This document shows, one piece after another, positions 3,646 through 64,000 of a DNA stretch of 64,000 bases; the stretch's first letter is position 1, and every line of letters begins with the position of its first letter. Under the pieces are notes generated by a model. The model saw only the letters and a list, made by a program, of their open reading frames with translations. It ran no database searches and was not told the origin of the DNA. Source of the stretch: Macrostomum lignano (lineage: Eukaryota); NCBI GenBank assembly GCA_002269645.1, contig NIVC01000619.1, positions 62,001 to 126,000 on the forward strand. Direction: 5' to 3'. The position numbers and the translations under genes were made by a program.

Positions 3646-4229
3646 GAAGCGAAGCGAGTAGATTAGCAATCCGTTTTGTAGTGTTAGAATCGAGCTTTTT
3701 ATTGTATATGGCCCATATTAGAGAATTTGGGCTTTTTATCGTTTTCGTGAAATTCGAAGGAATATCATTTCAGTAAAGAAGTTTTTGTCTCAAAAAGCAA
3801 ATGTATGTATTCGATAGTCTATGGTACATAGGGATGTTGGATCGTATCGTACGCAGTCCAAAATGATTTAGAGTTCCCTCGCGTCGCGTTCAAGCAAAAA
3901 CTAATAAAGTTGAAGTTGATCGCAGATGAGCAAAGAGCAATACATGATATTCCTTCATCCATGTTTCACAGGGATGCAAGCCTTGACCATAGAAAAACAA
4001 GAGATTTCAACAGACAAAGATGGATATGGCAGTTGAAGTATTAATTTAGCAAGCAGAGCTTCACCCCGAACAGCTTAAACGGCGAAGATATTATCAGAAT
4101 ATAGATCGGTTTCGATTTCAACATGTACAGCCCCAATTTCCTAATCGGTTTCTCTATAGAACTATAGACCCTATTTTCAGCCTATAGACCCCAGGACCAG
4201 ATAAACAACCTATAGAACACGACTGTGAT

Positions 4230-8100: not shown

Positions 8101-11100
8101 TGCAGGGCCCCTCCCAATTTCTTTATAAAATAGTCACCATTTAGTCAATTTGAATTCACGCCAAAACTAAGAAACATATTTTGTTTTAATACTTGTATTT
8201 TCTATAATATTTTGCGCTAACGAATTTTTGTTTAAAACTGTAGCAAATTTTAGTATAAATAGAAGCGTTTTTGGCAGAGGAGAGACCAACCTCGCGCATT
8301 GCGGTTCAATAATAAAACAGTTGATAGCTAATAATAAGAGTTTCGAGAAAATCTAATTGAAGAGGTGTTTTCTGTGTTGATTCCTTTTTACAAAGTAAGA
8401 GCGAAATAGACTGAAGCGTATACAGTACATACTATTGAGAAGCAGCAGTAAGAGTAGTAAGAGAGTAGTAAGAGAATACAAAGTAGATCTGAAGTGATAT
8501 GTGAAAGAATAACCGGAGGCTGTGACCCTCTGATCTCGGTAATGCCCAAGGACTTGCAAAGTACATGAAATACATATACCAGTTTAGCCAATAGACCACT
8601 TAGGCCAAAAGTACAGTGAAAGCTACCAGAACAATAGTAAACGTTACCGGAATAACAGGAGAACGATAACAACTGCAAGGGCTAAATAATATTCTAAGAA
8701 CAAAATACTCAGACTAAATACTCAGAGTAAATTCTCAGACTAAATACTCAGACTAAATACTAAGATATATACTTAGATCAATTCTAAGAAACATTTCTCG
8801 GATTATTCTAAGATTGATAAACTCATAATTTATTAGTAGGATAATCCTGGTGGCAGCTACAAACTTAAAGACTAGTATAGAAAGTCTAGCCCTTTGACAT
8901 TCTCAGTGTACAAGAAACACCACTAGTACAGTTTGGTGTCAGCGGTTGAGATTATTCTAGAGAGAGCTGAAAGGCCTAGTACAACTTTGGTACCAGCTGT
9001 GGGATTGTTCATAAAGATTGAGGAATAACCCCTTTGACAACTTTAGTGACAGCTGTGGAATCATTTGTAGGGACAGAAGCTACCCCCTAGCACAAGATGA
9101 AAGTAGAGAGGAAAGCTTTGAGATAAAAAGAGCAAAGAAGAAATAGGAGACAGGAGAAAGTCTTAGTCTAGAGGATAACAATCAATTTTTGCAAACAGGG
9201 AAAACCCCTATTGCGTGTATTGGATTAAATATTGAAAACTCATAGATATACACTTTAGAATAAAGTCAAATTATTTTATTGCACTTTATTTCTTTGACCC
9301 TTATTATCAAAAGTATTATAGGCCTACTATTTTTCAATATATTTATCCTAATTGTACCTGTGTCTTTGGCCAGTCTATGCCTGCATCTACTTAGCTACCT
9401 ATGTATATGTATTTACTAGAAAAGTAGCTAGTAAGAAGGGCAACATACATACTACATTTTTAAAAAACAAAGTACACTAGATGCTATCTACAGTTTTATA
9501 ACTTTTTCCTATAAGAGGAAAACAAGATGATAGGGCCTATTTAGAAAGTTTTATAGAAGATTTGGAAATTAAATAAGATTTGGGTCATTGGATCATAGGC
9601 TCATTATTATAAATATAACAAACATCACTTTTTTTAATTCTTGCTATTTTTTCAATATTTGTTTAAGCCTTATAATTCTTAAAAACCATTATATGACCTT
9701 AAATAAAATAGAACCATTCTAGGCCTATCAAACTATTTATTTTATCTGTACATAAAATAGGGGCCTAGGCCTAGTTCTATATCTATGAGCATCTATAGGC
9801 TTATAGTAGAATAAGATAAACCAGGGATCTGCCCTGGCTACATACACAAGTTCTTAGTTCTAGTCCAAATTGAAATATTTTTTTGTAACCTTTTTATACT
9901 TCTAGCAGTCCTATTCTAGCTAGGTTTAGTTCAAAGTACTAGCTATAGTGATGTCGTTACTGCAATGCTGATTTACTGAAGTTTTGCCAGAAACAAAATT
10001 AACACAAATGCTGCAAAGCAAAATACAATTGCCAAGAAAGAATGATAAGTGAAGAAAACAGTGACTGCTGTTGCTATAATACTTTGTGCGTGACTAGAGT
10101 CGAGAAAGAAAGCTAATAGCTTGCGGAAGCGGCTGAGCCATCCAGGCCAAGCGCTCTTTAGTCACAGGGCTCGTAACTCGTGGAGTCGTGATGAGCCTAG
10201 GGACTATAAAAATAATCTTATTTCTTATTAGTAGTAGTAGTAGTAAGTAAGTTGGCTCAGGCAAGAAGCCTGTTTGGCCAGTATATTTCTGTGTATTTAA
10301 GTTATTTTAGCATTAGTTGTTTAATTACGATTAAGTTCAAAAGGTTAAATTTGTTCAAAAGGTTAAATTTTTACACCAGTTACGATGCGAGTTACGATAT
10401 TTGTAAAATTATTAAGGTATTTGAAAGAGCGTTTTTTGTAAAAAGATATAGTATTTTGCAAGCGCGCAATATTTCAAAGCGTGAAAAACGAACGAAAAAT
10501 GAACAAAAACGAACTTCGAAAGAACTTTACGTTAAACGAAAAACGACGATTTAAATAGGTATTAGATAGGAAACTAAATTAAATACATAATTTGAAACCA
10601 TTGAAACCATAAATCATGACATCGTATAGGACAAAGCCAATTAACCTTAAACGTTTGCTGAGGAGAGAAAAATTCACACGGCCGGCCGAGCCTGTTGAGC
10701 CCGGAGTACGCGCCAACTTGGACCAAAAATAGCTAAAAATAGCAACAAAATTGAGAAGTTTGCAATTAAGGGATGGGGAACAGGCCGATGAGGTTAAGCT
10801 GAGTGGTTTAAGATTTGAAAGGACAAATTTTTAAAGCGCCGAAATAAAAAAATCAAATTTTCAAAATTCCACACGTTCTACTGTACATCTTGTTGAATGG
10901 TTCAGCGTACCGATGATGTGCATATACGACTCTATAATAACAAATTTGCGAATGTGCAGCGTGCATAGTAAATCCATTCTATTTAGTTACGGTGGTCAGG
11001 TGCTCATTTAAATCAGTTCTGATCAGTTTAATTCGATCGCAATCGAAAAGAGCTCTAAAATAGATAAATAAATGAGAGCCAAAATCAGCATTCGAAGGGT

Positions 11101-11535: not shown

Positions 11536-14500
11536 TCACCAGGCATTTCTGCCACCTCCAGGCTTCTTGGCGGTAGAGGTAGCCGCTGGTTTCGTCATTT
11601 TCATCTTCTTCTGCCACACTGTACCCACAGCGCCAGGCAAGGTGTTCGAGGATTCCGTGTCCGCGCTAATGCTGCTGCTCTCCACCGGACCCGAAGGCTG
11701 CTTCTGCTGCGACTCCGGCTGCTCCTTGCCCGCCGTTCCCGGGGCCAACTTGCTCACAACCGCCTTTAGTACAGTGTCTCGGCGTTTAATAAATCGCATC
11801 TTCCATTCCAGCCTCTCCACGTAGCCCTGTCGAGCCGAGCGAAGCTCCGAGAACAGGACGAATACGAGCTCGAACAGTTCGCAAACGGTGAGTAGCGACA
11901 TTCCTAGGTAGAGGCCCAGAATGCCGCCAATGTCGGAGAACAGATCAAAGAAACGATAGGATTCGAACTCCTCAACAACAGTGCTGAAGGCCTTGTTAGC
12001 GCCAAGAGTTACTTGGGCGAAGTTGCTAGCAAATTCGCGCTGCACTTTTTCTTCTGTAGTTAAATTGCGCAGGAAGTAGTAGAAGGTGTCTGGCACACTG
12101 AGATTTGCCTTCTCCAGCTGGCTGATATGGTATCCAAGGATTGTGTCCTTACAGTACACAGCCAGGCTATTCAGTGGCCACGAAGCCATGGACACGATTG
12201 GTGTGTAGATTTGTTCGCGACAGTTGGGCAGGCACTGTTGCATGCTGTTGAAAAGTGTACTCTCGCGCAGGATGAAATCGTGCTCGCACTGCGTCCTACG
12301 CAAAAATTCGGTGGCGTTGGTTGCTGGGGTGATGTGGTGGCACCGTGTAGCGTTGATGGACTCCGTGATGTTGTTGTATGGCGGCACAATGCGGCTGCAG
12401 AGGCAACCGCAGTTCTTCAAGATGGTGTCCAGAAGAGCTCGATACTGGCAGTCCTCCTTGTTCTTGCTGAACGCGATGCGATTCTGATCGGCGTCCTCAT
12501 AAAAAACAGATCGGTTCGCGGAAACGCACTGCTTCGCATTGCGGCTCACGTACCTGAAGTTGAGTAAAATGAGCGTTTTTCTTAGGCTAGTCAATTTACT
12601 CTCATGCAAGCTTCGGTCTGCTTTGAAACGGATGGAGCCTATAGCTTCATCCTGCATCCTTCATTTTATCGTTAGAAGCTTCCGATCAATCAGTCTAAGT
12701 TGTCGAGTTCAATCGCAAGAAAAGCTTTTTATTACTATTATAGTACTTTCAATAGTGATTGGAATATTCCTTGAGTCTTCTTGGCGCACTAGATTGAAGG
12801 CTAGATTAAGTTTAATGACATTTGCAGGTTAAAAATTTGTTAAATTGTGCACTATTTTAAGCAGGCCAATTGTCTCCACGCGACTTAAAAGTTCTTTTTG
12901 GACACACCCACCTTAGTCAGACAGCCAGTTGACGCCGGGTTGAACTGGAGATGTGTCAGATTGTGTATCCAATAGCAACAGGATTTGTTAAACTAAATCA
13001 AACAATGATTTTCGATAAGAAACCTGACCCAAAGTTTCTTCATTTTACTCCTTTGGTTGAGGCAAAGTGCAGCTGAATTGCATATGGACACATGACTTGA
13101 TCGACGCTAGTGACTTGCCAACTATATTGCTGATTAATATTACTGGATACTCAATTATTTACAACAATGAAGCCAATTTGCATTCAAAAGTTAAGAGATG
13201 ATGCACGAAAGCAGTCCATGCAGTCCCCATCGATTTTCACTCTCGCCGCTTTCGTTCGGCTAATTCAGAAAATGCAATTAAAACTTTTTAGCAAGCTTAA
13301 GTCTTTCCTTCCCAATTATATTTTAGTATAAGCGCTGCTCATTAATCGTCAATGAGATCCTTTGTCAGCTGACAGGAGTGTCTTGTGCGACTGTCCTCGA
13401 CTGTCATCTAACAATAGTTAGATGCTGCGGTAGAAAGCGTCTTGACGTGACTAATGACAACCATCACTCCAAAGTTATAATTAAATGGCCACTGTAGCTG
13501 TCAGAGCGCCAAATGTTTATTGAGGGACGCCAAAACTGCGCCCGTGGCGCCAAAACGAGTGTTGAAAGCGCCAATTAAAAATTTCATCACCAATCGGCTG
13601 TTATACGTACCTTTGCGCTTTGAAGATCACCATATTGAGCCCTTATACCGAGCCCTCAGTATATAAAGTTAGTTTAGAATCAAGTCATGAATTTGTACTA
13701 TCCTTGTTTCTATTAACTGAGATCAATAGCTTTGGTTTTATGTTCAACGCCAAGACTTGATTGATCGACGAATTAGCTGTCGTCTGGATCATTTTCATCC
13801 GAAATGCGTTATTTTGTTTTCGATTCTCAGAAAAGAAGGCTTTTTAGTAGCTTTTTTAATTAGCTACAGTTTGAAAATTCAAATTGCAGCTGATCGCTTA
13901 CCTGTACTCCACCATTTCAAAATTGACGTAAGAATGCACCCCCGGCGAGAGGTTGATGAAGTCCCTGGGGTAATGGTTTTTAGGGCCGTAGAATAGAATG
14001 GCGCCGCCAGATTTTGACACGTCATAGTCGCCCTCTCGTAGGTGATCCCGGCCGTCAGTCTTTCAAATATCACCATGCTTTTCGGGTTGGTCACTACTGG
14101 GTTGTTGTCCGTGAACAGTACCTGGCATGTGATATAAAATAAGGTTTGGATGGTGTTTTTAGAATCGTTTTTTACTTATAATTCTAAGCAAGTATACATG
14201 CGCGACGAACCAGTTCGAGCAGGAATTTCTCTATGAGCGCAGTCTGCTGGAGAACACTGTCCCTAGGCATAAACCGGAAACAGTTGCCGTACTTGCTGTC
14301 CCAGTAGTTCTGAAAGTCCAGATAAGAGCAATTGAACCCTTTGTACAGGCACCTGACTATGAAGACCTCGCGTCGCTGACCCAGATGCTGCAGCAGCATG
14401 GTGGGGCCGACCATGTCCTTGGCGATTTGCACAATCAGCTGATAATCAGTGCCGAGACCTTTCAAGTAGGCCAGACCAGCCACGAATCGGGACTCCGTGT

Positions 14501-14816
14501 ACAACTGGGCGTACAGGCTGGGATTCTTCGTGACCATTTCGTAGTAGTTGGTTGAGGATATCGGGCTCACCGAGCACACCGTGATGTCAGGCGTCTCGAA
14601 CTGGATCGCTCCCGGACTGATGCTTGTTGATATCGGGGTTGACAAGAAGTTGATGATTAGCTGCGCGATGTGATAGCTGAAGCCGGCCATGGCAGCCGCT
14701 AGGAACAGCATCCACAGCAGCTTCAGGGGCAGCGAGCGCCTGGCGTGGATTCGGCCGAATCCATGAGCGGTGGTTGTTGAGATAAAGTCCGAAATGGTGG
14801 GCACGCTTAGCTCCAT
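11536..14816 (-). CDS. DEG/ENaC (amiloride-sensitive Na+ channel/ASIC/FaNaC-like) subunit, 3 exons, ~614 aa
   Basis: Exons 14816-14211, 14121-13902, 12553-11536 (GT-AG). N-terminal TTAHG motif, TM1, Cys-rich ectodomain (YGNCF, CGC, CLPNC), TM2 DIGGILGLYLGMS with GxS filter. Exon 2 needs +1 nt at ccc 14031-14033 to read ...GDYDVSKSGGAILFYGPKNHYPRDFINLSPGVHSYVNFEMVEYR. Confidence 0.9.
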
Positions 14817-17248: not shown

Positions 17249-18492
17249 CACCATTTTACCTCCTATTTTGAACAAAGTCTTGTTCAAAAGAAACAAGCAG
17301 AACTTCAATTCAAACACTTTAAGAAATACAAATTTACTTTAAGAATACTTTAAGAAATTCAATTCAAACAAAGTCCCTTTCTATTGAAACAGAAGAACTT
17401 CAATTCAGACTGTCTGTGGCCAAAATTGTCCTTGAGTGACGCGCATGCACAGATTTGAAATTCAAAAGAAACAAAGTCGCATTCTATTTCGACAGAGGGA
17501 TAAAACACAACAGCTGATCGACGAACATAAGAGTAAAATGAAAAACAGGAACAAGACAGTGTCAGTTGGCCAACTTGAGACACCTGACCATCAATTGCCT
17601 GTCCACCAACGCAGTGAGGTACGTAAGTAAACACATGGTTGAACCACTCAGTGCACTTGTCCACAGAGATGCAGCCAATGGTTCTGTCCACCATGTTGTA
17701 CAGAATGTCTCGCCGATAGGCCGCCATTGACTGATTCCCGTGCTGCTCAGCTATCGGAGCGATGAAATTTTGCTGGTCTGCTGCCAGTTTTCTCATCAGA
17801 TCGAGTGTCCTTCCAACAGGAGATTGAGTTCTCCACAGGAATCAAAAATGGACTGTATGGTGGAAGCCACTTGACCTGAATGGTGTCCTAAATCTCGTAG
17901 GCTGCTTTTCTGCTCTCCCTGACCTCACGATCATGTTCGCTGTTGACCTCTTGACTCCAAGTTGGCGCGCCAGTTCCACAAGTCATCCCCAACAATCAGC
18001 AGCCCTGATGATACGGTCTCTGTCACTGTTGCTTAAACAATAGTGCACTGCCAAGGCTGCTGTTCCATGATATCTTCATCGAATTCTGCTTCAAATTCAT
18101 CGATTCCATCTTCCAGCAATTCATCGTCTTCTTCAATCTGATCTTCAGCATTAATATCGTTTCTTGTTGCGCAACGATTGTACAGTTATGCAGTACAGGG
18201 ACAACAAAAAAGTTAGATTAATGTACTTAAATGTACTTGTACCCATGTGCGAAAATCTCTGTCGAAATAGAATGCGACTTTGTTTCTTTTGAATTTCAAG
18301 TTTGCGCATGCGCGTCACTCAAGGACAATTTTTGCCACAGACAGTCTGAATTGAAGTTCTTCTGTTTCAATAGAAAGGGACTTTGTTTGAATTGAATTTC
18401 CGCAAGTGCTGATATTTCTTAAATTGTTTGAATTGAAGTTCTGCTTGTTTCTTTTGAACAAGACTTTGTTCAAAATAGGAGGTAAAATGGTG
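17249..18492 (-). mobile_element. Internally deleted Tc1/IS630-family DNA transposon with ~240-bp TIRs and TA TSD
   Basis: TIRs 17249-17497 and 18257-18492 (CACCATTTTACCTCC...), flanked by TA at 17247-48 and 18493-94. Minus-strand relic: HTH-like DRIIRAA..LARQLGVKRSTANMIVR followed almost directly by KWLPPYSPFLIPVE (DDE C-terminal motif) and DKCTEWFNHVFTYVPHC; stops and frameshifts. Confidence 0.88.
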
Positions 18493-23643: not shown

Positions 23644-27528
<3,885 letters not shown>

Positions 27529-46165: not shown

Positions 46166-46850
46166 CAACTAATTGTTTTGAGGTTTGAGTGCAGCGTGTT
46201 CCTATTCCAGCATCGTCAAAGAAAATGAAGTAGCAGCTGATAATTCGCTCATTAGTTAAGTTTCTCTCCAGACAATTGATCTGGTACTCCATGATTGAGT
46301 ACTCAGCTCCATGCAGCCCTGCCTACGCCTATATGGGCGCCACAACAGCTAACTCAGCTATTGTGCGGCCTCAGCTCCGCAGAACTGATCGATCAATCAT
46401 TGATTGCAGCTCGGCCGGGGGTCGATCTGGCCCAGACCTGATGAGAGCTCACCAGTTGCTTGAGTAAGTGCCGGCGCGTGTTTTTTCCAAACTCCGACCA
46501 GCTCCGAAGATGAGGAAGCAGGATTTTCAAGGGGAAAGAAGGAAAAATTGAATCCCAAGTTCAGCAGACAGCATGGCCGGACAAATTGCCAATTAATAAT
46601 TCGCTCAATCACAGAAATCTTTATTGAGCATGAGGTCTCTAGTGAAATCTGTTTCTTTCACGGCGGAGACCATCGAAGCTGAAGAGCCGCTACCGCTCAG
46701 CCTCCGCTGTCGCTCTCTTTGGCCCGCTCGCATTGGTCAGCGTCGGAACTTGCGAGGATCGAATGGCCAAGCTGGCATATGTAAGGGGATTCCAAGATTC
46801 TATTGGGACTGCCGCCCAGCTTGACAGATTCTGCGTCACTCCTCGCCAGC

Positions 46851-47537
46851 ATGACAGGCACCGGCTATGATCAGCTCAACAGCAGCTTGGCGCCCAACAA
46901 GTCCGTGTTCGACTCCCAGCGCCTGGCCAGGCCGTCGGTCTACCGGCACTGCGGCCGAGCCAGCCTGGCCATCGGGGTCGTCTGCCTGCTGGCCGAGATC
47001 TCCGTGTTCGTGGTCAAACGCGGCCTGAGCAGCGCCGGGGTCGGCATCTGGACTGGGGCGCCGTTCGTCATCTTTGGCGCAGTGACCCTGGCGGTGCCGA
47101 GGACTCGAACGGTGTGCTCGGTGAACACCTGCTTCGCGCTGGGCCTGGTCTCCATGCTCATGTCGGCCGTCGGTGCGGCAGCCTGCGCTCGGCACATCGG
47201 CGAGCTGGCCGACATTCTGGACAGTCGTTCGACTCCGCAACCGAACTTTGAGCTGTCCTGCCGAGCGTGCGGGTACTACATCATACTGAAGGAAGTTGTG
47301 CAGATCGGCCTGCTGCTGCTACAGCTGGCGGTTTCAGCCGCACTGGCCTGCTTTGCCTACGCCGACTGTTTGTGCTGTCAGGCCACGGAGACCGAGGTCA
47401 TCCTAGGCGGCAACGGTGGCTGTGGCGATGGCGAAGGCGGAAGCGGCGGCGGTCGTGGTGCGTCGACAACTGTCATGGAGAATCAGAACACCTCTCCGGC
47501 GCCGCCGCCACTACCCAGACCAGCTTTACTGGCCCAG

Positions 47538-47569
<32 letters not shown>

Positions 47570-47996
47570 CCCCCTGGGATTTACTCCCAGCCTGCTGGGT
47601 AATCAGCAGGCCCTATCCGGCGCCGCGTCTTTGTCGCGGGGGGGAGGCAACGCCCGTTCTTCGGGCGGCGAAGAGCGCCGGGAATCGGTCACCGCTCCTG
47701 GCTCAGGGGCGGTGGATGTGGCTCGGTCCGGCCCTCTGTGCTCAGCCTTTGTCGCTGGCTCTGTCAGCGGTAGGGGTTTGGTACCTGGTCCGGTTATTCC
47801 GGGCTCGGTCCGCAGTCAACAACAACAACAACAACAACAGCAGCAGCATCAATATTCTGCGAACGCGGCTGGGGCTGCAGCCACTGCGTCATCGTCCGTG
47901 TCCTATGTTGGACAGCGTCAGGCGGGGGGCAGGTCCGCCGCACAACCGCATCCTGGCGGCAGTTTTGGCCCGCCACCGATGCTCTACGATTTGTGA
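46851..47996 (+). CDS. MS4A/CD20-like four-TM protein with long Gln/Gly/Pro-rich tail, single exon, 381 aa
   Basis: GVGIWTGAPFVIFG motif in TM2, four hydrophobic segments, CLCC after TM4, two polyQ runs. Confidence 0.75.
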
Positions 47997-52687: not shown

Positions 52688-54218
52688 CTATGAGCAGAGT
52701 CTCTCTAACATTGAGTCGGCACTGCCGGACTCCGCCAGAGAAGATGGTGGCGAATGTGGTGTCTCCTGGCAGGGCTTGGGCTGGGCCACTGGGGCCAGGG
52801 TTGGCGCCTGGTGGACTTGAATGACGGCGGGCCTGCGGCCCTGCTGATGCTGCGGCGGTGGCGGCAGCGGCTCATCCGGCTGCTGCTCTGTCTGATGCTC
52901 CATCACTGATTGGTTCTCAGCAGCCTCAGCTGAGTACCCGGACACAAGCAGCAGCGGCAAATTCTGCTCATCTTCATCACCAGTTATTCCTATACGCGTT
53001 TTTAAGTAGTATGTTCAGCATTTTGTTACATGTTTTCCTAGAAAGCGTGAAACCGTAGATTGATCGGAAATCGCCTTCCTTTCTTAGAAATCTTTGTCCA
53101 GCGAATGCAAATTGGATGTCCAGAGCCATCCCAGCCGTCCCTTCTGCCCCGTTCCTCTCTGAGAGCTCTTAGAGCGCAATTGGAGCGAAGTGGCCTATTC
53201 ATGCAGTAATAGAGAAGAATTTTTGAATATTTGCCTGGATTATGCACGCCTCGAGTAGCGGAACTGATGGTGAATAGGTGGCAGAATTAATGGAAATCTG
53301 CGCCTCTCCCACTGCTCACCTGTTGAGCTAATATGCGGGATATTTGGACAATAGGGGTGATTTCCCCATAAAACTTTGCCCCGGTCCTATTCTAAGCCAG
53401 AGACGTTCGCGAAAAGTACGTCTGCCAACACTGCCGGCTGCAGCACTTCACTGACCTTCGCGAAGGGCTAGCACCCTGAAGTTTTCATCGGACAGCCCTG
53501 CAAGTTTTGGGTGAGCAATTGCCTGTCTAATATTGGCTGGACTGGCATTGTTAGTTGGGCATCAGTAGAACGCGAGTTGAAACACACGAATTTTCATAAG
53601 CAGTGCGAATCTTACTAAGTGGACTCAGTGACGAGTGCAGAGTCTCAAAGCCTGCAGGTAACGGTTGGTTCACTCAAGTTGTTACATTCTTTAATTTTGG
53701 ATAAAGATTTCGGATTTTTGGACTTCGAGCAGCTCAAACCATGCCAACTGCTGACTCTTAGTGCAGCAACAAAGACTCCCCCGAACACTCGGCCGGCAAC
53801 TGCTCACCCAGCCTGTTGAGTTTCGCCTCCAGACCGCCGCCTCCGCCGCCGCCGCCGCCTCCGATGCCGCCACCACCGCCGCCACCGCCGTCGACTCCGC
53901 CAGCGCCGCCGGCGCCAGTCGCCGATCCCTTCAACATCGGGTTGACTCGCCTCGGATTCGAGCTCGGAGACTTTGGCGGGCCGCTGCCGTTGCCGCCTGG
54001 GCCGCCGGGGCCGCCGGGAGGCGCGGGAGCCACCACGCCACCGCCGCCGGGCTTCGGCCGGACAGCCTCCACAGGGAGAACTCGGCGCCGCTTCTTTGGC
54101 AGCTTGCTGCGTGCCTGCGTGTGCGAGTAGAACATCGAGAAGTTCGACACGATGACGGGCACCGGCAGGGCGATCGTCAGCACGCCAGTGAGTGCGCACA
54201 GGGCGCCGACGAGCATAC
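52688..54218 (-). CDS. Shaw: Shaw/Kv3 voltage-gated K+ channel, 3' exons (S6 and C-terminus); 5' exons not in window
   Basis: Exon 54218-53808: [51 protein letters not shown], characteristic of Shaw S6/PVP region. Probable last exon 52929-52688 joins in frame (phase 1, GTGAGC donor); alternatively reads through to the stop at 53758. Confidence 0.9.
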
Positions 54219-54244
54219 CTGCGGGAGACGGTGGCGTGTAAGTC

Positions 54245-54962
54245 GTATGGTCAGCGTCTGGTCACTTCTATGGTCAGCGTCTGGTCACTTCTATGGTCAG
54301 CGTCTGGTCACTTCTATGGTCAGCGTCTGGTCACTTCTATGGTCAGCGTCTGGTCACTTCTATGGTCAGCGTCTGGTCACTTCTATGGTCAGCGTCTGGT
54401 CACTTCTATGGTCAGCGTCTGGTCACTTCTATGGTCAGCGTCTGGTCACTTCTATGGTCAGCGTCTGGTCACTTCTATGGTCAGCGTCTGGTCACTTCTA
54501 TGGTCAGCGTCTGGTCACTTCTATGGTCAGCGTCTGGTCACTTCTATGGTCAGCGTCTGGTCACTTCTATGGTCAGCGTCTGGTCACTTCTATGGTCAGC
54601 GTCTGGTCACTTCTATGGTCAGCGTCTGGTCACTTCTATGGTCAGCGTCTGGTCACTTCTATGGTCAGCGTCTGGTCACTTCTATGGTCAGCATCTGGTC
54701 ACTCTATAGTCAGCGTCTGGTCACTTCTATGGTCAGCATCTGGTCACTTCTATGGTCAGCGTCTGGTCACTTCTATGGTCAGCATCTGGTCACTCTATAG
54801 TCAGCGTCTGGTCACTTCTATGGTCAGTGTCTGGTCACTTCTATGGTCAGCGTCTGGTCACTTCTATGGTCAGCGTCTGGTCACTTCTATGGTCAGCATC
54901 TGGTCACTTCTATGGTCAGCGTCTGGTCACTTCTATGGTCAGCATCTGGTCACTCTATAGTC
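54245..54962. repeat. 23-bp minisatellite (atggtcagcgtctggtcacttct) abutting the Shaw acceptor
   Basis: ~30 units starting ~25 nt from the AG acceptor. Confidence 0.97.
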
Positions 54963-55188
54963 AGTAGTAATATACCATACAAAATTGCCAGCAAACCGTT
55001 CTCAAAATTCAATCAATTTAACTCTTTATCAGTGTAAAACGGCTCATTTTCCCTTCATTATCGCTCGTCTTCACTCTGCTCAACTCGCTCCGCTCATCCT
55101 CGCTTCATTTCGGTCAATTGCACCATTTCACACTTTCACCTTGGCAGGCGCCAAGGGTCTAAATTTATGTTACTAAAAATAGACATAA

Positions 55189-55600
55189 ATGACACATGTT
55201 ACACATATACAAAATCTGAATGAAATACAAATTGGAGACCCCGTAGAATACCGAGGATGAGGGTCTTTTTGATGTGGTTGGTACAGCAGCAAATTTTGTA
55301 AAAGACAATATGGGTCTTATAGGACAAGCGGGCTCTGCAGCAGGCTCTATAACAAACGCTGTAAAGGGCGGAATCGAAGCAGCGAGGGCAGTAGAAGAAC
55401 TAAAGAAATTGAAAGAACTTAACGACACCCTCTGACAAATAAAAGCAATAAAAGATTTGAAACTGGCACAGGAAGCAACTCAAGCCGCACAACCAACAGA
55501 AACCCCCACGAAAAGCGCGCCAATAAGTAATAAAGATATTCAGGATTTTAATAAAATGTTAACCACAATTAAAGGTGGGAAAGGATTAAAGAAATTTTAA
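55189..55600 (+). pseudogene. Polinton-like small core/virion protein, disrupted
   Basis: Reconstructs to MTHVTHIQNLNEIQIGDPVEYRG[fs]EGLFDVVGTAANFVKDNMGLIGQAGSAAGSITNAVKGG...TL*QIK...IKGGKGLKKF with a +1 frameshift near 55257 and TGA at 55433-55435 (likely CGA>TGA). Confidence 0.55.
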
Positions 55601-55610
55601 CAATATAAAA

Positions 55611-56455
55611 ATGGACTCAGTTAATAACGAAAATCGGCTATATTTTATAGCAGAGGTTGTAGACACTCTAGGTTTAGATGATAATAAACATAGTCACACA
55701 ATGTTAAAAAGATTGGATCGCTTAGGCAAAAAACTTGACTACGACATCAATACATTTAAACTTGCTTCAAAATATGCACAAGAAGGAAGGCCATATCCTT
55801 TAAGAACCGTGGTAAAAATTATCGGCTAACAGATTCTGATGTGAAATTTTTATTGAAGACTCACACTAAAAAGGACGGTGGATTGCGTGTATTACCCCTT
55901 GCAACTTTGCTCCCAATAATTTTTGGAGGAATTGCCGCAGCCGGAGGAGTTGCTGGTGGAGCGGCAGGAGTTGCAAAAGCAGCAAATGACAAAAAAGCTG
56001 CGGATGAAAAAGCTAAAAGAGATGCCGAATTTCAAAGACAGCAAATAACGCAGGATGCTCAATTCAAACAGAAACTCATAGACACCATTAATAGTAGTTC
56101 AGCAACAGCAGAGCAAAAAAGAAATGCAGAAGCTAGGTTAGCAGCCGGAGAAGGTTTAATTTTAAAAGGAACGACCCAAGGAAGCGGAGTTGTCGCGGAT
56201 AAACTACATGAGTTTGGGCGAACTTTAGAAAAAACGGGTGAGAAAGCTAAAGGATTTTTTGACAATATTGGAGCTAATTGTAGACCGGCTGTTCAGAAGA
56301 TTTTTAATGAATTGGGAAAAGATTTTAACATCATTGAAAAACATGACGGAAGCGGATTATATCTCGAAATGCGACCAAAAGCAGGTTCAGGAATCTTCTT
56401 AAATTCAAACGTTATGGGCAGCGGATTACTGTTACCAAAAGCGGATCTCGAATAA
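55611..56455 (+). CDS. Polinton/adintovirus pX-like (putative membrane-active, protease-processed virion) protein; ORFs 55611-55829 and 55841-56455 probably one gene
   Basis: Adding one T at 55799-55801 fuses the ORFs (EGRPYPFKNRGKNYRLTDSDVKFLLK). KDGGLRVLPLATLLPIIFGGIAAAGG resembles adenovirus pX RGGILPLLIPLIAAAIG; C-terminal repeats GEGLIL, GSGVV, GSGLYL, GSGIFL, GSGLLL. Confidence 0.7.
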
Positions 56456-56489
56456 ATACGAGCGTATTATATAAATTTTATTCTATAAA

Positions 56490-56711
56490 ATGGAACAAAG
56501 ACTGACCCCAGATCAAATTCGACAACTTCTTGCAAACGAGCGCGAACAGTTCAATCGATTACAAAGACAGGTTGAACAAATTAAACAGCGCCAAAGACAA
56601 AGACAAAGACAGAGAGCAATAGAAAGACAGAGAGCGAGAGAAAGAGAAAGAAAAAGACAAAAAGAAAGACAAATAGAAGATCAGCAAATAAAAGAATTAG
56701 CAAATAACTAG
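56490..56711 (+). CDS. Coiled-coil (R/Q/E-rich) viral-type ORF, 3'-truncated by the Helitron-like insertion
   Basis: Starts after ttctataaaATG; its TAG stop is supplied by the ACTAG terminus of the next element. Confidence 0.5.
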   Translation: MEQRLTPDQIRQLLANEREQFNRLQRQVEQIKQRQRQRQRQRAIERQRARERERKRQKERQIEDQQIKELANN

Positions 56712-57008
56712 CAATCTACGCCCCCCGTTGGGGAGCCAAAGAAATGCAATACACGTTTTTTTAATAAGCTACATGTATCCTTAAAATCTTAAAAAATCTC
56801 CTGTCAAACCTTGTAAGCCTTGACATGTCAGTTATCCCCCCCACAAGCTTTAACATATCAACTTCCCCCCTTGACATCTCAGCAATGCCCCCAATAAGCC
56901 TTGGAAATCTAAAAATATCTGTCAACCTTCTAACCCTAACCCTAACCCTAAAGCATTGAAATTTCAGTAATTCTCTCTAAGAGTCATTATAGCACTACTA
57001 CAGCATTA

Positions 57009-57344
57009 CAGGGGCGTAACCAGAGGGGGGCAAGGGGGGCCGTGGCCCCCCCATAATCACCAACTCTGGCCTTGGCGCCCCCCCCCTAAAAGAAACTGGC
57101 GCCCCCCTTAAAGAAACTGGCGCCCCCCTCCTAAAAGAAACTGGCGCCCCCTATAAGAAACTGGCGCCCGCCCTAAAATAAACTGGCGCCCCCCTAAAAG
57201 AAACTGGCGCCCCCTAAAAGAAACTGGCGCCCCCCTAAAAGAAACTGGCGCCCCCCTACAAGAAACTGGCGCCCCCCCCCTATAAGAAGCTGGCGCCCCC
57301 TAACTCAAGGCCCCCCCCAAACAAAATTCCTGGCTACGCCCCTG
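57009..57344. mobile_element. 336-bp hAT MITE with 15-bp TIR and 8-bp TSD
   Basis: CAGGGGCGTAACCAG ... CTGGCTACGCCCCTG (1 mismatch); TSD CAGCATTA at 57001-57008 and 57345-57352; internal ~20-bp ctggcgccccctaaaagaaa repeats. Confidence 0.93.
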
Positions 57345-58199
57345 CAGCATTATAGCGATTCCTTGCAAGCCTCAACATCGTAGGGATTCCCAAATGAATC
57401 TCTTAACTTCGACATGAAGCTTCTTTTATTTTTTACATTACGCTTTTTTATCAGCGATCCCTCCCCTGAGGAGGCATCAAATAATGTAATAAAAAGTTTT
57501 CAATAAACTACATGTAGCTTCTGACTTTAGCCTTGATATCTCATTTATACCCCCGTGAGCCTTGACATCTCAGCTATTCCCCCCGTAAGCCTTGACATGT
57601 CAGCAATGGCCCCCATAAACCTTCAAATCTAAAAAAATCCCCTGTTAACCTTGAAATCCGATAAAATATAACCCTCAACCCACACCTGACCTAAACCTAA
57701 CTTTAACCGAACCTAAAGCCTTGAAATCTCAGCAATTCTTCTCCCCTAAGCCTTGACATTTTAGTGATTCCTTCTTTAAGAATCACAGCACTATAACGAT
57801 TTCCACCAAGCTTTGACATCGTAGCAATTCCCAAATGAATCTTTTAACTTCGACATGACTTTTCTTTATGTATACATAGTGCTACTTTTATTTTTTACAT
57901 GACTTTTCTTCTATCAGCGCCCCCGTGACGAGCCAACAAAGAATGCAATAAAAAAATGGAGTAAAGTACATGAACTTTGAAGTAGCTTCTGACTTTTGCT
58001 TTGACATCTCAGAAACCCCCCCCCCCGTAATCTCAGTTATTCTCTGAGAGCCTTTACGTCTCAGTTTTTCTCCCCAGCACAGCATTATAGTTGCATTTAA
58101 TTTTTACATGAACCCTTCATGTCTGACATGACGTTTCTTTTATTCTACCGTGACGCTTCTTAATTTTTTAAATGACACTTTCATTAGTTTTAAATGAGG

Positions 58200-59415
58200 C
58201 TTCTATGATTTTTTCTTGACGCTTCTATGATTTTTACATGACGCTTGTATGATTGTTTACATGACGCTTCTATGATTGTTTACATGACGCTTCTATGATT
58301 GTTTACATGACGCTTCTATGATTGTTTACATGACGCTTCTATGATTGTTTACATGACGCTTCTATGATTTTTACATGACGCTTCTATGATTGTTTACATG
58401 ACGCTTCTATGATTTTTACATGACGCTTCTATGATTGTTTAAATGACGCTTCTATGATTGTTTACATGACGCTTCTATGATTTTTTAAATGATGCTTCTA
58501 TGATTTTTAACATAACGCTTCTATGATTTTTTACATGGCATTTCTATGATTTTTTACATGACGCTTCTATGATTGTTTACATGACGCTTCTATGATTTTT
58601 TACATGACGCTTCTATGATTTTTTAAATGACGCTTCTATGATTTTTTAAATGACGCTTCTATGATTGTTTACATGACGCTTCTATGATTGTTTACATGAC
58701 GCTTCTATGATTTTTTAAATGACGCTTCTATGATTTTTTAAATGACGCTTCTATGATTGTTTACATGACGCTTCTATGATTGTTTACATGACGCTTCTAT
58801 GATTTTTTACATGACGCTTCTACGATTTTTTACATGACGCTTCTATGATTGTTTACATGACGCTTCTACGATTTTTATATGACGCTTCTATGATTGTTTA
58901 CATGACGCTTCTATGATTGTTTACATGACGCTTCTATGATTGTTTACATGACGCTTCTACGATTTTTTAAAAGACGCTTCTATGATTTTTTAATGACGCT
59001 TCTATGATTTTTTACATGACGCTTCTATGATTTTTTACATGACGCTTCTATGATTGTTTACATGACGCTTCTATGATTGTTTACATGACGCTTCTATGAT
59101 TGTTTACATGACGCTTCTATGATTGTTTACATGACGCTTCTATGATTGTTTACATGACGCTTCTATGATTGTTTACATGACGCTTCTATGATTGTTTACA
59201 TGACGCTTCTATGATTTTTTAAATGATGCTTCTATGATTTTTAACATGACGCTTCTATGATTTTTTACATGACGCTTCTATGATTTTTTAAATGACGCTT
59301 CTATGATTTTTTAAATGACGCTTCTATGATTGTTTACATGACGCTTCTATGATTTTTTAAATGATGCTTCTATGATTTTGTAAATGACGCTTCTATGATT
59401 TTTACATGACGCTTC
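58200..59415. repeat. 23-24 bp satellite (tacatgacgcttctatgatt[g/t]tt) inside Helitron-like copy 1
   Basis: ~50 units; same family at 61615-62155. Confidence 0.96.
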
Positions 59416-59979
59416 TTTTTAAAAAGTCTTTTAGTTTTCCTGACGTTGAAAAGCTTTAATTAAAAAAATTATACTCTATGAAAATTCAAACCATCGTCAC
59501 TGCATTTAGCAGTTCAATTTGTTCACCTTTAGGCTAGCTCTCATCGTTTTGATAACATCAACTTTTGCACTTATATAACTCAACACTTTTAAATCCAAGC
59601 ATAGAGTAAATCACACGAAGCAGTTATGACATAATCAGTTTCTCAGTCAGTCAGTATCAGTTAACAATATGGTTACGCAATTTCCACACTTCCACACTGC
59701 ATTTTCAATTCAAGTCGGAGTTACAATTCAGTTATGATGCAATCTATTTCAGAGTCAGAATTCAACCAGTCATTTTTTTCTCTAGCATTCTTACAATGCA
59801 TTTTTCAAGTCAAAAAGTTTGCTTGACCTTTGCAAAAAAGCATGTTTTTCGAATATTTAATGCCTTTAGCATCGAGCAATTTCTTAGCCACGATGCATGT
59901 ACCGTCACGGGAAAATTTCTGATCGAACAGTGCAAGTTCGAACAAAATCGGTCCAGCCATTTTTTCTCTAATCGATCAC

Positions 59980-60016
<37 letters not shown>

Positions 60017-60044
60017 CACAGACAGACCATTTTTAGTATATAGG

Positions 60045-62778
60045 ACTAGCAATCTACGCCCCCCGTTGGGGAGCTAAAGAAATGAAATACACGTTTTTTT
60101 AATAAGCTACATGTAGCCTTGAAATCTTAAAAAATCTCCTGTCAAACTTCTAATAGCTTTATAACCCTTACCCTAAACATAACCCTAATTTAATATTTTG
60201 TCCATGAGTTTTTGCATGATGCTTCTATGATTTTTTGCATGACGCTTACATGATTTTTCACATGACGCTTCCAATATTTTTGCATGACGCTTCTATGATA
60301 AACATTTTTAATAAGCTACATGAGCTAAGTTATAAGCTACCCTAACCCTAGCACAAACCCGAATCTTAACGCTATAACCCTAACCCTAACCCTATACCCT
60401 AACACCAACGCTAACACTAACCCTACAGCCTGACATCTGCATAAGTTTGTGAAGCGCTAGTAGTATTTTTTAGCTTAGTATCTTAGCGTTTGGGAGCCAA
60501 AAAATGGAGTACAAGTTTTGTAATAAGCTACATGTAGCATCTCTTTGCAATAATATACTGCTTTGAAAGCAGTCCCTTGTGAGCATTGACATGTCAGTAA
60601 TTCCCCCCCCCCACAAGCTTCAACATATCAACTTCCCCCTTGACATCTCAGCGATGCTCCCCATAAGCCATGAAATCTAAAAAAATCTGTCAACTTTCTA
60701 ACCCTAACCCTAGCCCTAACCCTAACCCTAACCCTAACCCTAACCTAAATAACCCTAACCTAACCCTAAAACATTGACATTTCAGTAATTCTCTCTAAGA
60801 GTCATTATAGCACTCTTGGAGAGAATAGCGATAGCGATTCCCCGCAAGCCTCGACATCCAAATGAATCTCTTAACTTCGACATGAAGCTTCTTTTATTTT
60901 TTACATTACGCTTTTTCTATCAGTGATCCCTCCTGTGAGGAGCCAACAAATAATGAAAAAATGTTGTCAATAAACTACATGTAGCTTCTGATTTTAGCCT
61001 TGACATCTCATTTATTCCCCCATGAGCCTTGACATCTCAGCTATTCCCCCCGTAAGCCTTGACATGTCAGCGATGCCCCCCATAAACCTTGATATCTGAA
61101 AAATCCCCTGTTAACCTTGAAACACGTAAAACCCGTAGAATCCCCTGTAAAATCTAACCCTCAACCCAAACCTAACCTAAACCTAACTTTAAACCAACCT
61201 AAAGCCTTGAAATCTCAGCAATTCTTCTCCCCTAAGCCTTGACAATTTAGTGATTCTTTCTTTAAGAATCACGTACAGCACTATAGCGATTCCCTCCAAG
61301 CCTTGACATCGTAGCAGTTCCTAAATGAATCTTTTAACTTCAACATGACTCTTCTTTTATGTATACGTAGTGCTTCTTTTCTTTTTTACATGACTCTTCT
61401 TCTATCAGCGCCCCCCATGGCAAGCCAACAAATAATGTAATAAAAAATTGAGTAAACTACATGTACTTTGAAGTAGCTTCTGACTTTTGCTTTGACATCT
61501 CAGAAACCCTCCCTGTAATCTCAGTTATTCTCCGTGAGCCTTGACATCTCAGTAATTCTCCCCAGCACAGCACAATAGCTTCATTTAATTTTTACATGAC
61601 ACTTCTTTCATATCTGACATGACGCTTCTTTTGATTTTTACATGACGCTTCTTTTATTCTTCCATGACGCTTCTATGATTTCTTAAATGACACTTCCATT
61701 AGTTTTTATATAAGGCTTCTATGATTTTTACATGACGCTTCTATGATTTTTTACATGACGCTTCTATGATTTTTTACATTACGCTTCTATGATTTTTTAC
61801 ATGACGCTTCTATGATTGTTTACATGACGCTCCTATGATTTTTTACATGACGCTTCTATGATTTTTTACATGACGCTTCTATGATTGTTTACATGACGCT
61901 TCTATGATTGTTTACATGACGCTTCTATGATTGTTTACATGACGCTTCTATGATTGTTTACATGACGCTTCTATGATTTTTTACATGATGCTTCTATGAT
62001 TTTTTAAATGACGCTTCTACGATTTTTTACATGACGCTCCTATGATTTTTTACATGACGCTTCTATGATTGTTTACATGACGCTTCTATGATTGTTTACA
62101 TGGCGCTTCTATGATTGTTTACATGACGCTTGTATGATTTTTACATGACGCTTCTTTTTAAAAAGTCTTTTAGTTTTCCTGACGTTGAAAAGCTTTAATT
62201 AAAAAAATTATACTCTATGAAAATTCGAACCAAACTGCATTTAGCAGTTCAGTTTGTTCACCTCTAGGCTAGCTCTCATCGTTTTGATAACATCAAATTT
62301 TGCACTTATATAATTCAACACTTGAAAATCCAAGCATAGAGTAAATCACACGAAGCAGTTATGACATAATCTGTTTCTCAGTCAGTCAGTATCAGTTAAC
62401 AATTTGGTTACGCAATTTAAATCAAGTCTGGTGCTACACTTCCACACTGCATTTTCAATTCAAGTCGGAGTTACAATTCAGTTATGATGCAATCTATTTC
62501 AGAATCAGAATTCAACCAGTCAGTTTTTTCTCTAGCATTCTTACAATGCATTTCAAGTCGAAAAGTTTGCTTGACCTTTGCAAAAAAGCATGTTTTTCGA
62601 ATATTTAATCCCTTTAACATGAAGCAATTTCTTAGTCAAGATGCATGTACCGTCACGGGAAAATTTCTGATCGAACAGTGCAAGTCTCATGAAAATCGGT
62701 TAAGCCATTTTTTCTCTAATCGATTACAAGCAAGCAAGCAAGCAAGAGTTTCATTTCTCATGATTTCATGGATAGAAT
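60045..62778 (+). mobile_element. Non-autonomous Helitron-like element, copy 2 (head-to-tail with copy 1)
   Basis: Same ACTAGCAATCTACGCC start at 60045; same module order; lacks the hAT MITE; ends aaaatcggttaagcc...(gcaa)n...catggatagaat; (CCCTAA)n at ~60370-60420 and 60700-60768; satellite 61615-62155. Confidence 0.7.
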
Positions 62779-62879
62779 CTCTGCTCTCTACAAGTAACAA
62801 AAAGACACCCAAATAAAGCCTTCACAAAGATGACAGACAAACTGCTCAAATAAAGTGTAATACAAAAAGAAATCATCCC

Positions 62880-63130
62880 AAGACAGCAAGCATTCCCCAG
62901 ATAGCAAGCATCCCCCAGATTGCAAGCATCCCCCAGATAGCAAGCATCCCCCAGATTGCAAGCATCCCCCAGATAGCAAGCATCCCCCAGATTGCAAGCA
63001 TCACCCAGATAGCAAGCATCCCCCAGATTGCAAGCATCCCTTAGATAGCAAGCATCCCCCAGATAGGAAGCATCCCCCCTCCCGGATAGCAAGCATCCCC
63101 CAGATAGCAAGCATCTCCAAATAGTAAGCA
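62880..63130. repeat. 20-bp minisatellite (gcaagcatcccccagat[a/t])
   Basis: Tandem units. Confidence 0.92.
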
Positions 63131-63234
63131 TCCACCATACAATAAGTAGCTAGTGCTACAATTTCCTTAGCTCTATAGTGGCTCCTTTAAAATTAGCATG
63201 ACGCTTACTTTTACGTTTGAAATTGTGTAAATTT

Positions 63235-63910
63235 TATGTTTGACATGGTGGCTCTTTAATGATTGACATGGTGGCTCTTTTATGTTTGACATGGTGGCTC
63301 TTTTATGTTTGACATGATGGCACTTTTATGTTTGACATGGAGTCACATATATGTTAGACATGGTGGCTCTTTAATGTTTGACATGATGGCTCTTTTATGT
63401 TTCACATGGTGGCTCTTTAATGTTTTGACATGGTGGCTCTTTAAATGTTTGACATGGTGGCTGTTTTATGTTTGACATGGTGGCTCTTTTATGTTTGACA
63501 TGGTGGCTCTTTAATGTTAGACATGGTGGCTCTTTATTGTTTGACCTGGTGGCACCTTAATGTAATGATGGCTCTTTAATGTTTGAAATTGTGGCTCTTT
63601 AATGTTGGACGTGGTGGCTCTATAATGTTCGACATGGTGGCTCTTTAATTTTTGACATGGTGGCTCTTTAATGTTCGACATGGTGGCTCTTTAATGATAG
63701 ACATGGTGGCTCTTTAATGTTCGACATGGTGGCTCTTTAATGTTAGACATGGGGGCTCTTTAATGTTAGACATGATGGCTTTTTAATGTTCGACATGGTG
63801 GCTCTTTAATGTTTGACATGATGGCTCTTTTATGTTTGACATGGAGTCACATATATGTTTGATATGGTGGCTCTTTAATGTTAGACATTGCGGCTCTTTA
63901 ATGTTTGACA
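63235..63910. repeat. ~23-bp minisatellite (gacatggtggctctttaatgttt)
   Basis: ~28 degenerate units. Confidence 0.93.
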
Positions 63911-63961
63911 GTGTGCTTTTTTGTGTTTAGCATTTTGTGTTTTTAAGGTTTTTGAATAAAA

Positions 63962-64000
63962 AAATCTTTTTGCACTACTAAGATTCGAACCCAGGTCGCT
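63962..64000 (-). other. tRNA/SINE-like 3' half (B box), cut by window edge
   Basis: Revcomp AGCGACCTGGGTTCGAATCTTAGTAGTGC contains GGTTCGAATC. Confidence 0.35.

Follow-up and report, generated by a model that had tools for sequence, protein, structure and literature searches.

A probable viral fragment with a pX-like gene beside a potassium-channel exon of Macrostomum lignano

Three small, A-rich reading frames lie in close order within a 64,000-nucleotide stretch of Macrostomum lignano DNA (contig NIVC01000619.1, positions 62,001 to 126,000; hereafter the window, meaning this whole stretch), which is animal nuclear DNA very rich in minisatellites. The frames occupy 55189-56711, stand on the + strand in the same orientation and are separated by gaps of only 10 and 34 bases, an arrangement that raises the question of where such a block came from and whether it is still a working gene cluster. 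An earlier note, made from the letters alone, had taken it for a Polinton/adintovirus-like remnant of three packed, co-oriented genes with a shared start context, placed in an intron of a K+ channel gene. The analysis presented here confirmed the packing, the orientation and the start context, and indicates that the stretch is very probably a truncated fragment, integrated in the germline and now decaying, of a Polinton/adintovirus-like (‘MELD’) double-stranded DNA virus. This reading is carried by homology, conserved gene order, linkage of the homologues to viral hallmark genes, likeness to adenovirus pX, truncation at both ends and counted reading-frame breaks. The parts of the fragment are as follows.

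55150..56705, + strand: the whole virus-derived fragment, ~1.55 kb, truncated at both ends (delimited by AT skew and homology, with the 3' limit set by a host repeat)
55189..55600, + strand: gene 1, a small virion-core-type protein (in relatives its homologues immediately precede the gene-2 homologue)
55611..56455, + strand: gene 2, a modular X-domain membrane-active capsid-core (Macc-type) precursor (homology, alignments and family profile)
55877..55990, + strand: pX-like module of gene 2, an invariant Gly-Gly followed by a Leu/Pro-rich and then Gly/Ala-rich hydrophobic segment (Pfam and PDB matches of the family)
56348..56434, + strand: three GxG-(L/I)-(Y/F/L)-L motifs in a row at the C-terminus of gene 2 (motif count against shuffles; invariant glycines)
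56490..56711, + strand: gene 3, a 73-codon open frame that has the common start context (list of open reading frames; tandem repeat; host repeat at its stop)

The gene pair and its viral relatives

The common start context takes the form TAAA(A)ATG (...cataaATG, ...tataaaaATG and ...tctataaaATG). AAA precedes the ATG at all three starts, compared with one of the 22 other ATGs of the region, and in six related contigs AAAA-ATG is found at 16 of 18 gene starts versus 14 of 311 other ATGs. The AT skew is positive between ~55150 and ~56750 and not outside that range, homology to related metagenome contigs (L001, L002, L009, L012, L016 and L017; L-numbers denote loci and P-numbers related proteins) spans 55283-56446, and the G+C content of 55189-56711 is 0.38, near that of the surrounding intron-like DNA. 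Counted against intact relatives, the fragment has three frame breaks in all: one frameshift and one in-frame stop in gene 1, which had already been described as decayed, and a single break in gene 2, gene 3 being open. Searches used either the unjoined open pieces or intact database proteins. As to the three genes originally proposed, genes 1 and 2 have homologues and gene 3 is probably not a complete gene.

The closest clade consists of short metagenome contigs, at most 5.9 kb in length. The order gene 1 to gene 2 is kept in every one of them (six distinct contigs and seven loci: L001, L002, L009, L012/L013, L016 and L017), and gene 1 is the constant upstream partner of gene 2. The gene that follows is an OTU-motif/PolB gene in L002, L012/L013 and L016 and an adenain-like gene in L001, with a short stub in two more contigs. 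In L012 a protein-primed DNA polymerase B of 1168 residues lies directly downstream (PF03175, E = 1.1e-15), and the PolB genes of L002, L012 and L016 carry an OTU-type D-E-N-C-F-Y-K-C motif (DENCFYKCI in L002 and L016) ahead of the polymerase domain. OTU-PolB has been described in adintoviruses (PMC8502044), for which the published definition is OTU-PolB, hexon and an rve integrase with a C-terminal chromodomain (PMC11071296). Association with animals, a further adintovirus criterion, is seen in the window itself, which carries animal ion-channel exons (Kv3/Shaw, relatives of ASC/ENaC PF00858 and an SK-type pore exon). Adjoining the gene pair in L001, L010 and L016 is a protein 120-153 residues long in which G-x-H-W, F-D-S and Q-x6-C-G motifs are conserved and whose profile has clan CE proteases as its only PDB matches (adenain at E = 0.85 with two sequences; SENP8 at 0.12 and adenovirus protease at 1.2 with three); these alignments cover the catalytic His and Asp. 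In L001 this putative protease gene is followed, at 2019-2534, by a fibre-like protein with a weak YadA-stalk match.

Integrase and capsid genes appear alongside family members that are less close to gene 2 and that sit in clear-cut elements of the Polinton/adintovirus type. In Diabrotica virgifera the protein P0006 (PF08398, X module and G-x-G-L-Y-L tail; locus L003) belongs to a multi-copy element that encodes an rve integrase (PF00665, E = 1.8e-14), an ATPase of the Pox_A32 type (2.8e-9) and a double jelly-roll (DJR) capsid (PF21738, 2.6e-66), and L003 adds to its rve a weak Chromo match (E = 0.0065). P0018 comes directly after a DJR capsid gene on a 21-kb contig that also holds rve, A32 and, at one end, a host actin gene, whilst P0012 has a DJR gene on one side and an A32 ATPase on the other, with rve adjacent. 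The rve integrase is present in the distant-member loci L003, L014 and L015; in L014 a protein with weak SLATT / zeta-toxin matches follows the pX-like gene (10502-11059). Linkage of the homologues to Polinton hallmark genes had been set beforehand as the test of a Polinton/adintovirus-like origin, and it was found: close homologues are linked to pPolB and an adenain-like gene, distant ones to rve, A32 ATPase and DJR capsid.

Degraded adintovirus sequences have been reported as endogenised in a wide range of animals (PMC8502044). Like these, and like endogenous Polintons and Mavericks, the fragment is viral DNA in an animal genome that is decaying by frameshifts and stops and has relatives with pPolB and rve; it differs in that only ~1.55 kb is left, from which the genes that define such elements are absent, as are terminal repeats and a target-site duplication.

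The gene 1 relatives are ~115-130 residues long, with tblastn identities of 30-38% over 95-100 residues. Gene 1 has a Gly-Gly close to its N-terminus and a middle part predicted to be helical and amphipathic, and it ends in a conserved K(S/G)GKGLK(K/R)F; the YRG / EGLFD and IKGGKGLKKF strings quoted in the earlier note are present in it. No Pfam or PHROG family matched gene 1. As an analogy only, it resembles adenovirus pVI in being a small internal precursor with a Gly-Gly near the N-terminus, a predicted amphipathic stretch and, behind a glycine-rich site, a short conserved peptide at the C-terminus; none of the pVI families showed similarity to it in sequence or profile. The junction of genes 1 and 2 (the ...GKGLKKF end, the stop codon and TATAAAAATG) shows 84% DNA identity between window 55568-55615 and both L009 54-102 and L001 682-726, well above the 66-74% DNA identity of those adjacent coding parts that align at all, and it may be a regulatory or start element.

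The pX-like module of gene 2

Gene 2 opens with a helical domain at its N-terminus; the pX-like hydrophobic module comes next, then a long helical middle, and GxG-hydrophobic repeats stand at the C-terminus. Its open piece matches P0001 with E = 3.6e-66 and 59% identity, and P0001, P0002 and P0003 (272-319 residues) range from 48 to 59% identity (E = 3.6e-66, 1.4e-46 and 2.6e-36, respectively). The family is large: its profile found 313 proteins in a large protein collection, and an exhaustive search of 1.84 billion cluster representatives returned 1044, 424 and 42 at E <= 1e-3, 1e-10 and 1e-30. A four-sequence family alignment searched against IMG/VR and JGI metagenomes yielded no confirmed related locus. 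The suggestion that gene 2 was near intact stands in so far as one frameshift and no extra stop were found in its ~280 codons; it fails in that gene 2 has one hydrophobic X module, whereas its eight closest relatives have two.

The proposed likeness to adenovirus pX was upheld by Pfam and PDB matches of the family. Against the Pfam model Adeno_PX (PF05829, gathering score 25 bits), P0018 scores 25.9 bits and so lies above the cut-off, P0003 scores 22.7 bits and P0001, P0004 and P0005 score 9-12 bits; several other members of the family carry a precomputed PF05829 match. The best match of the family profile among 177,635 PDB sequences is the adenovirus PX chain 9lr9_E (E = 0.02), in an alignment that covers GG-(F/I)LPLL and the Gly/Ala-rich stretch. 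Gene 2 itself falls below the Pfam model, and its membership of the pX group therefore holds at the level of the family, transitively. The likeness to pX (pre-Mu; PF05829; 9lr9 chain E) consists of the Gly-Gly followed by (F/I)LPLL... and a Gly/Ala-rich hydrophobic segment, and it is limited to ~30 residues, with the window copy below the Pfam threshold. Adenovirus pX has ~80 residues and contains the arginine-rich, DNA-condensing Mu, whereas proteins of the gene-2 family have 150-320 residues, are without the basic Mu part and have gained other modules.

Glycines dominate the conserved positions. In a 30-sequence alignment the invariant columns are almost all Gly (the GG that precedes every X module, a GSG in mid-protein and the GxG before L-Y-L), and the GxG glycines of gene 2 are among them. 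The GG-LRVLPLATLLPIIFGGIAAAGGVAGGAAGVAKAAND string and the five GxG motifs pointed out in the earlier note are present; GxG[LIV] occurs five times in the 204-codon open piece, whereas 2000 shuffles gave 0.20 on average and never more than 3. These invariant GG and GxG-hydrophobic motifs likely mark the subfamily as substrates of an adenain-like protease, and the C-terminal GxG run is a candidate for protease sites or for membrane/capsid-binding repeats.

Membrane-active accessory virion proteins with a pX-like domain at their end, PLA2X and GasderminX, have been described in adintoviruses (Starrett et al. 2021; PMC8502044, section 3.2). The gene-2 family shares with them the pX-like module with its preceding Gly-Gly and the G-x-G-L-Y-L tail; indeed, the C-terminal tail of gene 2 recurs in the PLA2-fused proteins P0006 and P0114 (PF08398 plus tail), both of which were found by the family profile and sit in elements with PolB, rve, A32 ATPase and DJR capsid. 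Unlike PLA2X and GasderminX, gene 2 and its close relatives have neither a PLA2 nor a detectable gasdermin domain and possess instead a helical N-domain of ~85 residues, and gene 2 of the closest clade lies directly upstream of PolB, not beside a capsid gene. The parvovirus-type phospholipase A2 domain PF08398, which in PLA2X stands N-terminal to the X module, is absent from gene 2 and from P0001-P0005 and present in P0006, P0114, P0115 and P0119; a gasdermin domain was found neither in Pfam scans of gene 2 and its relatives nor by Foldseek, and the X module occupies the centre of the protein and not its C-terminus. Within the X-domain family, gene 2 and its close relatives form a fusion class of their own, beside the PLA2X and gasdermin-like fusions.

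In the AlphaFold model of P0001, the nearest intact relative (mean predicted local distance difference test score, pLDDT, 65.8) the N-domain of ~85 residues is predicted as helix-helix-helix-hairpin-helix with pLDDT 80-96; the X modules have pLDDT < 50, and ~100 residues of long helices and then the GxG repeats follow. Values below 50 in the X module are as expected of a membrane or disordered segment. The model of the N-terminal open piece of gene 2 from the window is a three-helix unit of mediocre pLDDT (68.5). A winged-helix reading of the N-domain would rest on topology alone and is not claimed, and fowl adenovirus PX, which appeared at rank 27 of the Foldseek results for P0001, was set aside as a meaningless match (E = 2.8).

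Fragment ends and host surroundings

The fragment ends in host DNA, the features of which are listed below.

56706..56950, no strand assigned: host dispersed repeat that ends the fragment, made of 30-base units and ending in (CCCTAA)3 (other copies in the window)
54246..54964, no strand assigned: host minisatellite with 31 copies of a 23-base unit, which lies some 200 bases upstream from the fragment (Tandem Repeats Finder)
53758..54219, - strand: Shaw/Kv3-type K+ channel exon with S6 helix and C-terminal tail (best PDB match KCNC1, E = 1.3e-16; splice acceptor tctcccgcag)

At the 3' end, roughly half of gene 3 consists of tandem copies of the 6-base unit CAAAGA (56592-56673), and its stop codon falls within the first bases of the dispersed repeat that starts near 56706. 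Its shared start context is the reason for reading it as a genuine gene start, and it is probably the 5' stub of the element's next gene, which the host repeat cut short a few dozen codons in. The most likely candidate is the 5' end of the polymerase gene, for which the similarity to the N-termini of the relatives' downstream genes is marginal (shuffle p 0.03-0.24). The repeat at 56706 has copies at ~60033-60147 (93% identity), 60487-60669 and 60996-61088. Members of this family (56706-56950, 60033-60147, 60487-60769 and 60996-61203) start with ACTAGCAATCTACGCCCCCCGTTGGGGAGCC, continue in 30-base units (AGCCTTGACATCTCAGC...) and end in telomere-like (CCCTAA)n of 3 to ~14 copies. At the 5' end, the ~200-220 bases just upstream of the fragment are unique and unlike the upstream regions of its relatives. 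Host repeats thus flank the fragment on both sides, the downstream one recurring at three other sites in the window, which supports integration into host DNA. Four different 23-base minisatellite arrays of 25-55 copies each lie within 10 kb (54246-54964, 58151-59416, 61578-62157 and 63232-63910), and many more arrays are spread across the window, the recurrence of the 23-base period being striking.

The fragment lies ~970 bases 5' of the Kv3-type exon and antisense to the channel gene. The location in a K+ channel intron, as first proposed, is borne out to the extent that a Kv3-type exon adjoins the fragment; only one exon of the expected pair is in the window. This exon, downstream of the fragment in the channel's own orientation (53758-54219, at lower coordinates), is the only flanking channel exon, and a motif scan of 54217-64000 found no pore or S4 voltage-sensor motif. 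The upstream channel exons must lie beyond the window, so that we can only infer an intronic location. An Rfam match to K_chan_RES (RF00485; 54.6 bits, gathering score 51) at 54142-54254 on the - strand takes in both the splice acceptor and the part of the exon that codes for S6; its outer helix has many non-canonical pairs and the score seems to come mostly from the conserved S6 coding sequence, and a real RNA editing hairpin is doubtful here.

Elsewhere in the window, other host genes were found at 1844-3669 (-), 11536-14816 (-), 23644-26747 (-) and 46803-47996 (+); they comprise acyltransferase-like exons, ASC/ENaC-type channel exons, SK-type K+ channel exons with a TVGYGD pore and an exon of a Gln/Gly-rich membrane protein. 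The best matches of a 372-residue ASC/ENaC exon (PF00858 relatives) among 5.8 billion proteins reach 23-31% identity, and such low identity of host proteins fits a poorly sampled lineage. A 145-codon frame at 17359-17796 (-) has weak similarity to the rve integrase of L014 (E = 0.023, 21% over 81 residues) and no Pfam match; possibly it is what is left of a DDE-type transposase that has nothing to do with the fragment.

Origin, mode of action and meaning

Several results weigh against reading the stretch as a piece of an integrating Polinton or adintovirus. When the window was searched with the hallmark proteins of all related loci, no polymerase, integrase, ATPase, protease or capsid gene was found, nor were terminal inverted repeats or a target-site duplication, both ends of the fragment being truncated; what the window holds is a fragment and not a Polinton/Maverick element, as pPolB, rve, DJR capsid, ATPase, protease, terminal inverted repeats and target-site duplication are all missing from it. 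An rve integrase or capsid gene is likewise missing from the closest-clade contigs, and the word ‘integrating’ therefore depends on more distant members of the family. The Pfam models OTU and Peptidase_C5 are silent on the neighbours of the relatives, and the identification of the 120-153-residue neighbour as an adenain-like cysteine protease, from its motifs and profile matches (E = 0.12-1.2), is plausible but weak. The open piece of gene 2 in the window gives no Adeno_PX match even at E <= 1, and Foldseek searches of BFVD and PDB with the P0001 model returned nothing at E <= 0.001. Finally, the conserved GG/GxG sites mostly have no Met, Leu or Ile at position P4 of the canonical adenain consensus.

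Some of these points would also suit a different source, namely an adenovirus-like or other integrase-less MELD virus of the pX-bearing consortium, inserted by accidental non-homologous joining, in place of a strict Polinton/Maverick or adintovirus. The closest clade shows just PolB, an adenain-like gene and a fibre-like gene, the absence of rve and capsid genes being put down to the shortness of its contigs, and genomes that combine adintovirus-class virion genes with other replication and integration modules have been reported (PMC11071296). However, the PolB of the relatives has the OTU-type motif that defines adintovirus PolB, and rve is present in every longer contig of the wider family; an integrase-less source is improbable.

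A second alternative holds that gene 2 is a domesticated host gene, its frameshift being an assembly error, that is expressed as the precursor of a captured membrane-active X-domain peptide. A single break in so many codons and high identity in the conserved motifs would agree with this, and it has been speculated that venom PLA2/melittin-type genes derive from captured PLA2X-like genes (PMC8502044). Nevertheless, domestication is very unlikely: the neighbouring gene 1 has two breaks, gene 2 is without a module that every close relative has, neither splice signals nor a promoter of host type came to light, and the position is antisense in an intron-like stretch between repeats. Were it true, gene 2 would be an independent case of the speculated route from a viral X-domain to a host toxin or antimicrobial peptide, and would come from a previously unnamed X-domain subfamily with a helical N-domain, a double X module and GxG-hydrophobic repeats.

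It might also be supposed that the DNA of a free virus or a contaminant was misjoined to host sequence during assembly of repeat-rich DNA, given that the fragment is bounded on either side by repeats, where chimeric joins classically occur, and that its relatives all come from metagenomes. Such an artefact is scarcely credible when set against three frame breaks in 1.5 kb, which would be unexpected in a free virus, a gene cut exactly at the end of a host repeat family and a G+C content near that of the surrounding DNA. An ordinary cellular gene or a bacterial or phage contaminant is exceedingly improbable: the curated-family scans that might have favoured it gave nothing beyond weak sub-threshold Pfam/PHROG noise, there is no curated family match, and the informative neighbours of the homologues are all eukaryotic-virus hallmark genes. 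The earlier note had named best matches to cellular, bacterial or phage proteins as what would overturn its proposal; Pfam, PHROGs and PDB sequence scans of the window's open pieces contained no such match, only noise. A scan for sigma-70 promoters and terminators gave nothing above shuffles, a result that is irrelevant to a eukaryotic virus.

If the fragment derives from a Polinton/adintovirus-like virus, its genes can be given a tentative role. Adenovirus pX and pVI are substrates of adenain, which cuts them at GG-X or GX-G sites. Adenovirus VI and X are also the canonical members of the membrane-active capsid core (Macc) class of proteins (PMC11071296). By comparison with these, the products of genes 1 and 2 would be packed inside the capsid as internal virion precursors, and the adenain-like cysteine protease of the element would, as the particle matures, cleave both at the conserved GG / GxG sites. 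The hydrophobic or amphipathic peptides so released would disrupt the endosomal membrane at entry, a role that the PLA2-fused variants also imply. Taken together, virion location, proteolytic processing and membrane activity at entry make up a scheme to which we give an even chance of being right. The GxG sites were rejected as canonical adenain sites owing to the residues usually present at P4, and the site specificity of the protease would then differ from that of adenain. As for the fragment itself, the element presumably arrived by integration, which its own integrase would have carried out, and all but ~1.55 kb would then have been lost through deletion and the insertion of host repeats. 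With three reading-frame breaks, what is left does nothing as a virus.

Since endogenous adintovirus debris and the pX-like module have both been published, the fragment is an ordinary one, one more of a known sort. For the host genome it is a neutral fossil, at most a marker for dating the insertion or a possible source of small RNA. It adds one apparently poorly sampled animal lineage to the hosts of adintovirus/Polinton-like viruses, and the sizeable, unannotated subfamily of pX-like capsid-core proteins to which it led, with ~1000 cluster representatives and a curated family for none of them, is a useful lead for the annotation of virion modules.

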